From Octopus sinensis (lineage: Eukaryota), in contig NC_042999.1 of NCBI RefSeq assembly GCF_006345805.1, forward strand, positions 138,012,001 through 138,076,000: 64,000 nt of DNA. Reading direction: 5' to 3'. The notes beneath the pieces were generated by a model that saw only the letters and a program-made list of their open reading frames with translations, had not been told where the DNA came from and searched no databases. Position 1 is the stretch's first letter, and the number at the start of each line of letters is the position of its first letter. Positions 14,743 to 15,213 of the stretch are shown one piece after another. A program made the position numbers and the translations under genes.

Positions 14743-14828
14743 ATAGCTCAGTCGGTAGAGCATCAGACTTTTATAGGTCAACCTTAGAAGTATTCTGAGG
14801 GTCGCGGGTTCGAGTCCCTCTGCGGGCG
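14743..14828 (+). tRNA. tRNA-Lys-TTT: Intron-containing tRNA-Lys(TTT) copy lacking the first 6 acceptor-stem bases (probable retro-pseudogene of a pre-tRNA)
   Basis: TAGCTCAGTCGGTAGAGCA D arm; anticodon stem TCAGA/TCTGA (14763-67/14794-98); anticodon TTT at 14770-72; 19-nt intron at canonical position 37/38 (14774-14792) whose 3' part AGAAGT pairs with ACTTTT of the anticodon region; T arm GGTTCGAGTCC; 3' acceptor strand TGCGGGC plus G73. Confidence 0.85.
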
Positions 14829-15213
14829 TATGGAACTAGTTGGCATTACCTTCAAAATACATCCAAGGCTTGGACCACGTTCCATCCGTCCACAACAAAA
14901 ATCTAAATCGCATCACATAACGACAATACGGCACAATTATTTCACCTCAATTGGACCCGTTCTCTTCAACATTACACCAGGACACGTCAAAACAGAAACT
15001 GACCACACAAAATTCAAGAAGTCTTTGGACAAATTCCTTCAAAGAGTCCCGGACAAACCACCCACACCCGGATATGTCTCCGCAAACAATAACTCTCTGC
15101 TGGAATGGGACTCGGTGCCCAAATCCTGAATTGAATGACTTCGTCAGGTGGTGCTCTTAAGTTAGACATGGCCTGGCCCATACTGGCCAAAACCTTTCTA
15201 TGTTATCTAAGTT
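14829..15213 (+). mobile_element. CR1/L2-type LINE 3' end fused to the tRNA copy; related to 584-1082
   Basis: ORF 14830-15129 (VGITFKIHPRLGPR...PDKPPTPGYVS) aligns without gaps to the C-terminal part of ORF 587-1000. It shares the 3' UTR motif CAGGTGGTGCT..TAAGTTAGACATGGCCTGG and is followed by (TA)n. Confidence 0.9.

Follow-up and report, generated by a model that had tools for sequence, protein, structure and literature searches.

We found that positions 14743-15213 of the window (the whole 64-kb stretch of DNA analysed) hold a copy of tRNA-Lys(UUU), tRNA positions 7-73, followed by the 5'-truncated 3' part of a LINE, and that this unit lies inside a TA microsatellite. The most economical reading of the arrangement is a single chimeric retrotransposition event. 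We consider it probable (about 0.6) that the LINE reverse transcriptase (RT), while copying LINE RNA, switched template in one event to a pre-tRNA that was still unspliced and lacked CCA, and that the 5' end was joined to the target at an ATA microhomology. The features are listed in Table 1. They bear out the anatomy described in an earlier note on this DNA, which had given tRNA positions 7-73 with both the A and the B box, the first six bases missing and (TA)n surroundings; the Rfam match, TRF and direct reading together agree with it on these points.

Table 1 Features of the tRNA-LINE unit, its flanks and the comparison LINE copy, in window coordinates.
Feature	Position	Strand	Basis
Upstream impure (TA)n / TA-CA compound microsatellite	14290-14742	.	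TRF: period 2, 229.5 copies, 82% matches
tRNA-Lys(UUU) 5' exon, positions 7-37	14743-14773	+	Rfam RF00005 alignment, direct reading
A box TAGCTCAGTCGG	14744-14755	+	Direct reading
Anticodon TTT	14770-14772	+	Direct reading
19-nt intron TAGGTCAACCTTAGAAGTA at 37/38	14774-14792	+	Direct reading, constrained fold
tRNA-Lys(UUU) 3' exon, positions 38-73	14793-14828	+	Direct reading; last base = discriminator G
B box GGTTCGAGTCC	14807-14817	+	Direct reading
10-nt linker TATGGAACTA	14829-14838	+	Direct reading; matches no LINE copy
LINE ORF2 C-terminal remnant, 5'-truncated, 96 codons + TGA	14839-15129	+	Identity to other LINE copies
LINE 3'UTR, 83 nt, conserved hairpins, degenerate octamer (TATCWAAG-type) end	15130-15212	+	Four-copy alignment and consensus fold
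Pure (TA)42, then (TG)16	15213-15327 (TA part 15213-15296)	.	TRF 97% matches
Comparison LINE copy, ordinary 5'-truncated, same family, without tRNA	584-1083	+	(TA)n flanks 550-583 and 1083-1105

The Rfam tRNA model (RF00005) matched 14743-14821 on the + strand with 37.6 bits, against a gathering threshold of 29, and an E-value of 2.6e-4 for the whole window. It runs from model position 7 to 64, and the anticodon loop carries an insert of 20 nt. Coverage of the covariance model is partial, and the 5' acceptor strand (positions 1-6) is missing. At a cut-off as lenient as E<=0.05, the 64-kb window gave no second tRNA-like Rfam match, and the low-complexity matches to miRNA and Pestivirus-UTR models in the window were rejected as microsatellite artefacts. 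Direct reading showed no CCA after position 73 of the fragment. A Pol III terminator (a run of at least four T) is also missing shortly after this position; the anticodon holds the only such run inside the unit, and the next one, a T5, is at 15347. ARAGORN called 0 genes in the window, a silence that is uninformative because the program also mis-called intact intron-bearing genes. We class the fragment as a retrocopy or a pseudogene rather than as a gene.

The pairing of the intron was determined in a constrained fold, in which the four cloverleaf stems were enforced and six inferred 5' bases were added for folding only. In this fold, the intron pairs through C32:G(-3), U33:A, U34:A, U35:G, U36:A and A37:U, giving a helix of 6 bp. 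The anticodon-intron helix stacks on the anticodon stem, leaving U(-2), A(-1) and U38 unpaired as a bulge of three nucleotides at the 3' splice site. A helix and bulge of this kind are the canonical arrangement of eukaryotic pre-tRNAs, and its hallmarks were all seen here: an intron at 37/38, a pyrimidine at position 32 facing a purine at -3, and a bulged 3' splice site. Among shuffled introns, only 0.5% formed six pairs in the same register (p=0.005). The constrained fold was adopted because the unconstrained folds were either non-significant, as for the truncated fragment (z -1.2), or without the anticodon stem, as for the MFE structure obtained with the six inferred 5' bases restored, although the latter reached z -3.7. 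The in-register helix and 3-nt bulge, together with the G(-3) that also occurs in the 38 intact genes described below, show that the intron is genuine. This confirmed the earlier claim of a 19-nt intron at 37/38 that pairs with the anticodon region, including C32-G(-3).

Intact genes of this type were found elsewhere. A metagenome scan with a pattern made up of the Lys-TTT anticodon arm, an 8-38-nt insert and the fragment's T loop returned 38 intact intron-containing tRNA-Lys(TTT) genes on 36 contigs (L008-L043). In every one of the 38, the 5' acceptor strand (GCCCGG[C/T]) is complete and a 16-23-nt intron at 37/38, A38 and G(-3) are present, and an Rfam re-scan of 12 contigs (13 genes) gave 52-61 bits over model positions 1-71. 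TTTT starts 2-7 nt past position 73 in 34 of the 36 evaluable genes, several genes have a TATA-like sequence directly upstream, and none of the 38 is fused to a LINE. The contigs are animal, and at least one is lophotrochozoan. L013 encodes a GT92 protein (Pfam PF01697) with Paralvinella, an annelid (41%), and Haliotis, a mollusc (35-37%), as the sources of its best named relatives, L014 also carries U3 snoRNA and tRNA-Gln, and L016 has an ORF that resembles a leucine-rich-repeat protein as judged by eye. The names of some of these contigs presumably belong to a gutless-worm sample series. Intron-bearing Lys-TTT parents, on which the reading in the earlier note depended, thus exist on animal contigs. 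No parent gene with this exact intron was found, and an exact-pattern scan for TAGGTCAACCTTAGAAGTA gave 0 matches in the genome-contig and viral-contig collections, which lack the source genome.

On five of the contigs (L014, L015, L026, L039 and L040, all Ga0224511), several genes share near-identical flanks, upstream ..CAATGTCAGTA and downstream ..AAGCTCTATATAGACTTCTCGTACTC, and on L040, two copies of the Lys-TTT(intron) gene lie 2.7 kb apart; this indicates a repeated tRNA gene unit, which in L014 has the U3 snoRNA and the tRNA-Gln as neighbours. In the viral collection, the IMG/VR contigs L003-L007 (two of them labelled GVMAG, for giant-virus MAG) have tRNA-Lys(TTT) genes with 12-25-nt introns at 37/38, and in L004 and L007 the anticodon complement AAAAGT stands right before the 3' splice site. 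Yeast also has intron-containing nuclear tRNA-Lys(UUU) genes.

Compared with intron-containing tRNA-Lys(UUU) genes, the fragment has the same anticodon arm, 37/38 intron and G(-3):C32 pair, and the T arm of the L027 group, but lacks positions 1-6 and the terminator and has T38 in place of A38. Its 5' exon is the same as that of the intact genes L027, L034, L035 and L038 at 30 of 31 bases, with position 7 as the sole difference, and its 3' exon is identical to the L027 group at 33 of 36 bases, including the whole T arm (GCGGGTTCGAGTCCCTC). The fragment and the L027-type genes differ at 4 of 67 positions (7, 66, 67 and 38). A7/T66 of the fragment replaces T7/A66 of the relatives and is thus a compensatory pair, and position 67 is the partner of the missing position 6. 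A38 is invariant among the 38 intact relatives, and the T38 of the fragment points either to an unusual source gene or to a later mutation of the copy. Damage after insertion was considered for the C50·U64 mismatch in the T stem and rejected, as five intact genes have it too (L027, L034, L035 and two in L038) and it is therefore native. The difference at only four positions, the compensatory pair and the native mismatch therefore place the tRNA part in a real lineage of intron-bearing Lys(UUU) genes.

LINE homology begins sharply at 14839 (GTTGGCAT). At this breakpoint, three other copies of the family (584-1083 in the window, P0001/L001 and P0002/L002) read ...CCAAATGAT-(G/A)TTGG..., and their coding sequence continues upstream. 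The tRNA-linked LINE part is 84% identical in nucleotides to 710-1083 of the window, and the protein remnant shows 72% amino acid identity to P0001 and 63% to P0002. No Pfam model was found for the LINE C-terminal domain. P0001 has 38% identity to another LINE C-terminus, at 1204-1704(-), and it aligns (E 6e-5) with the C-terminal region that follows an RVT_1-bearing ORF at 25913-27707(-); this alignment downstream of RVT_1 therefore identifies the remnant as the C-terminus of LINE ORF2. The open reading frame, 14830-15129, has 99 codons with its stop TGA at 15127-15129, and is composed of three linker codons (MEL) and 96 LINE codons. An uninterrupted 99-codon LINE C-terminus had been proposed; the frame is indeed open, but LINE homology is present only from 14839 and the first three codons belong to the linker. 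When the 99-aa ORF was used in a protein search for MELVGITF-type starts, only two distant LINE fragments were matched.

All four copies share a highly conserved 3'UTR, with CCAGGTGGTGCTATTAAGTTAGNCATGGCCTGG and a GGCC....GGCC hairpin, and the relatives end in (TATCWAAG)2-3 followed by short (TA)n. The hairpin and octamer tail were seen in all four copies, with stems that are invariant and hence show no covariation, and an ORF2 C-terminal domain is located downstream of the RT. The tail architecture is CR1-like, and the family was recovered as C-terminal fragments only. The two window copies (14839 vs 584-1083) differ at 46 of 288 coding bases, distributed 9/12/25 over the codon positions. The bias towards third positions and the open state of both frames therefore indicate descent from different active lineages, with little decay after insertion.

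Both window copies lie inside TA arrays, and the family ends in (TATCWAAG)n + (TA)n; TA microsatellites may be targets of the family, or products of it, or both. At 1201-1704 (-) there is a C-terminal remnant from another LINE family (38% amino acid identity), to which copy 584-1083 is oriented tail-to-tail. Other retroelement remains were also observed. Directly past the LINE tail in L001, at 655-900 (+), there is a GIY-YIG-looking motif (..YCIRCLACDALYVGQTGRRLADRFAEHLRDI..) that is Penelope-like by eye. ORFs at 48890-49989 (-) of the window resemble a Penelope-type GIY-YIG region by eye and have no Pfam match. The RVT_1-bearing LINE at 25886-27707 (-) has its C-terminal domain split over overlapping frames, and an APE+RT LINE at 51647-55009 (+) is in three ORF pieces, with molluscan sequences as nearest named relatives (~44%). 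For the RTE-like ORF2 in the window, the best matches showed 54% identity, and the named matches were molluscs at ~44%.

The linker between the two parts was compared with the LINE copies, the intact tRNA genes and its own surroundings. It matches at 1 of 9 bases in register with CCAAATGAT, which is conserved in three copies, and a diverged LINE sequence was rejected as its source. No second copy of the linker was found nearby, nor any linker-derived target site duplication (TSD) past the LINE tail. The earlier note had raised the question whether TATGGAACTA is the 3' trailer of the parent gene. This is unlikely, since in 34 of the 36 intact genes TTTT begins no more than 7 nt past position 73, and no run of T occurs in the linker. 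The trailers of the nearest relatives begin with TA. The linker is best treated as junction filler, or partly as trailer, and may be filler added at a template jump.

Both ends of the tRNA-LINE unit adjoin TA arrays, as do both ends of copy 584-1083. TA arrays make up 2.4% of the window (29 arrays), and the chance that a truncated tRNA end would abut one is ~5e-4. Since its TA flanks are shared with the ordinary copy, the tRNA and LINE together look like a single insertion. The 453-bp upstream array, whose last pure run is 14725-14742, ends exactly at tRNA position 7, and presumably represents the target site and 5' junction of the unit. This array is impure (82%, TA/CA compound), whereas the TA run on the downstream side is pure (97%) and gives way to (TG)n, as would be expected if the unit had entered a single compound microsatellite and its tail had been newly made; the (TA)42 at 15213 is LINE tail and/or remainder of the target array. 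No TSD is readable, both flanks being TA repeats, and the same holds for copy 584-1083. The arrangement is that of a small-RNA/LINE chimera, in which a sense small RNA stands directly 5' of a truncated LINE with its tail. Two other origins of the tRNA part were rejected. Truncation of a resident tRNA by another LINE tail upstream does not agree with the lack of a LINE 3' end before 14290, and the molluscan Helenus LTR elements with tRNA-Lys-TTT-like sequence (PMC10886601) do not fit, as there is no LTR context and an intron is present here.

In the mechanism that we propose, the LINE RT would prime on a nick in the TA/TG compound microsatellite and copy the last ~375 nt of the LINE RNA. About 10 unrelated nucleotides would be added or copied, and the RT would then switch to a nuclear pre-tRNA-Lys(UUU), unspliced and without CCA, entering it at the discriminator base at its 3' end; this RNA would be copied through the intron as far as position 7. 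Joining of the cDNA end to the target at A7-U8-A9 / (TA)n microhomology would account for the loss of tRNA positions 1-6. A7-U8-A9 is the sole stretch in the 5' part of the tRNA able to anneal to (TA)n, so that the truncation there fits a microhomology-mediated 5' join. Presence of the intron and absence of CCA indicated that the template was the unprocessed precursor, which is a nuclear species in animals, and the sense orientation favoured template switching over twin priming. From this anatomy we infer the switch of template, the join at the microhomology and what the linker represents. Some features speak against a template switch: a jump onto a primary transcript should leave oligo-T, 10 nt is long for non-templated addition, and T38 departs from the invariant A38. 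An RT switch onto a pre-tRNA had been suggested in the earlier note. It holds in that the tRNA part is a copy of an unspliced, CCA-less precursor, in sense orientation and 5' of a truncated LINE, but an already fused source locus would yield an identical anatomy when retrocopied.

The linker is the weakest point of the template-switch model, and it sustains this rival, which we regard as unlikely. Here a truncated LINE would lie just downstream of an intron-containing tRNA-Lys gene elsewhere in the genome, having landed before the tRNA terminator or replaced it, and Pol III read-through RNA, recognised by the LINE RT, would have been retrocopied into the present site with 5' truncation at position 7, as a very young SINE-like element. 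The resulting anatomy is the same as that of a template-switch product, the boxes are intact with no run of four T other than the anticodon, so that a Pol III transcript could span the unit, and the complete LINE 3'UTR and tail are kept. The lack of oligo-T in the linker is also more readily accounted for if it is genomic DNA with junction filler than if a primary transcript ended there. SINEs that contain LINE bodies, and SINEs that arose from tRNA-RTE chimeras, have been reported according to the citations in 10.1101/2025.02.02.635956. Against this rival, only one copy was seen in 64 kb, no second MELVGITF protein was present among the 99-aa ORF matches, the intron had 0 matches in the genome and viral collections, and 0/38 intact genes were LINE-fused. 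In addition, the 10-nt linker exceeds the usual terminator distance of 2-7 nt.

Coincidence in situ is likewise improbable. It would require a resident tRNA-Lys gene, a LINE inserted 10 bp downstream of it, and separate loss of the first six bases and the upstream flank to the TA microsatellite or a deletion, that is, two or three independent events ending exactly at the tRNA borders. Such tRNA genes do exist in related animals, several of them with TATA-like sequence upstream, and trailers starting with TA occur in the nearest relatives. CR1-type LINEs often give short TSDs or none, so the missing TSD is not decisive, and the non-LTR elements of Dictyostelium that target tRNA gene neighbourhoods provide a precedent. 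Against it, there is no terminator within 10 nt, unlike in 34/36 intact genes, the 5' truncation adjoins the TA array just like the 5' end of an ordinary LINE copy, and no linker-derived TSD follows the LINE tail. A false join in the assembly, which would have set an unrelated TA repeat against the tRNA-LINE, is very improbable. The 453-bp impure TA array is of the type that assemblers collapse or mis-join, but the tRNA and the array overlap only by ATA, which is too little for joining, so reads must span (TA)n-ATAGCTCAG. The tRNA-linker-LINE junctions are in unique sequence, and an artefact would leave the missing CCA and terminator and the LINE fusion unexplained.

Whether the unit can be regarded as a SINE was considered separately. 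In principle the unit has the anatomy of a SINE, as both the A and the B box are intact and nothing is missing from the 3' recognition region of the LINE; the 3' region is common with the partner LINE, its 3'UTR and tail being shared with three other copies. The earlier note had proposed a newborn SINE, for which we found no support: there is a single copy in the window, no other MELVGITF starts and 0 intron matches, and the other three LINE tails continue upstream as LINE. Copies sharing the junction numbered one in the 64-kb window and none in the protein, genome-contig and viral-contig collections. A SINE at birth, with a Pol III-competent pre-tRNA head and a TA-targeting CR1-like tail, already transcribed and starting amplification, and with the Lys(UUU) intron widespread in lophotrochozoans, is a speculative reading to which we give little credence. 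Most likely the chimera arose once, as a side product when LINE RNA was reverse transcribed.

The unit was then compared with known systems. Chimeric tRNA/L1 insertions are known in mammals and are mostly antisense half-tRNAs (bioRxiv 10.1101/2025.02.02.635956). Like the U6/L1 and tRNA/L1 chimeras of mammals, which arise when the RT switches template during target-primed reverse transcription, the present unit has a copy of a small Pol III RNA at its 5' side, fused to a truncated LINE with tail, and as in U6/L1 the small RNA is in sense orientation. Unlike the antisense half-tRNAs, the locus holds a near-full-length, unspliced, CCA-less pre-tRNA. It also differs from the mammalian L1 chimeras in having a CR1-like, TA-associated LINE with a microsatellite tail in an invertebrate-type genome, a 10-nt filler, and a TSD that is unreadable in the TA repeat. 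A second likeness is to tRNA-derived SINEs with CR1-type tails, of which the tortoise tRNA-Lys Pol III/SINE is an example. As in TguSINE1/PittSINE of passerines, a tRNA head with A and B boxes stands on a LINE 3' end with a hairpin and microsatellite tail, and for PittSINE a switch of CR1 RT onto tRNA-Asp has been proposed as the origin (bioRxiv 10.1101/081950). In contrast to such SINEs, the present unit is a single copy without a family, its tRNA head is nearly unaltered, with the intron kept and truncation at position 7, and its LINE part is long (375 bp including 96 codons). A limited literature search brought up no chimera and no SINE head in which a tRNA intron had been kept.

Template switching of LINE RT onto tRNA is the standard hypothesis for the origin of tRNA-derived SINEs, and the families from which such origins are usually inferred are old, amplified and degraded. 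A chimera in single copy and hardly changed, as probably seen here, would be the raw product of a LINE RT switch onto a tRNA. The kept intron and missing CCA fit capture in the nucleus, the site of target-primed reverse transcription. The commonly listed animal tRNA introns are those of Tyr, Ile-UAU, Leu-CAA and Arg-UCU (PMC12168002); Lys-UUU is outside this set, which makes a survey of tRNA introns across invertebrates worthwhile.
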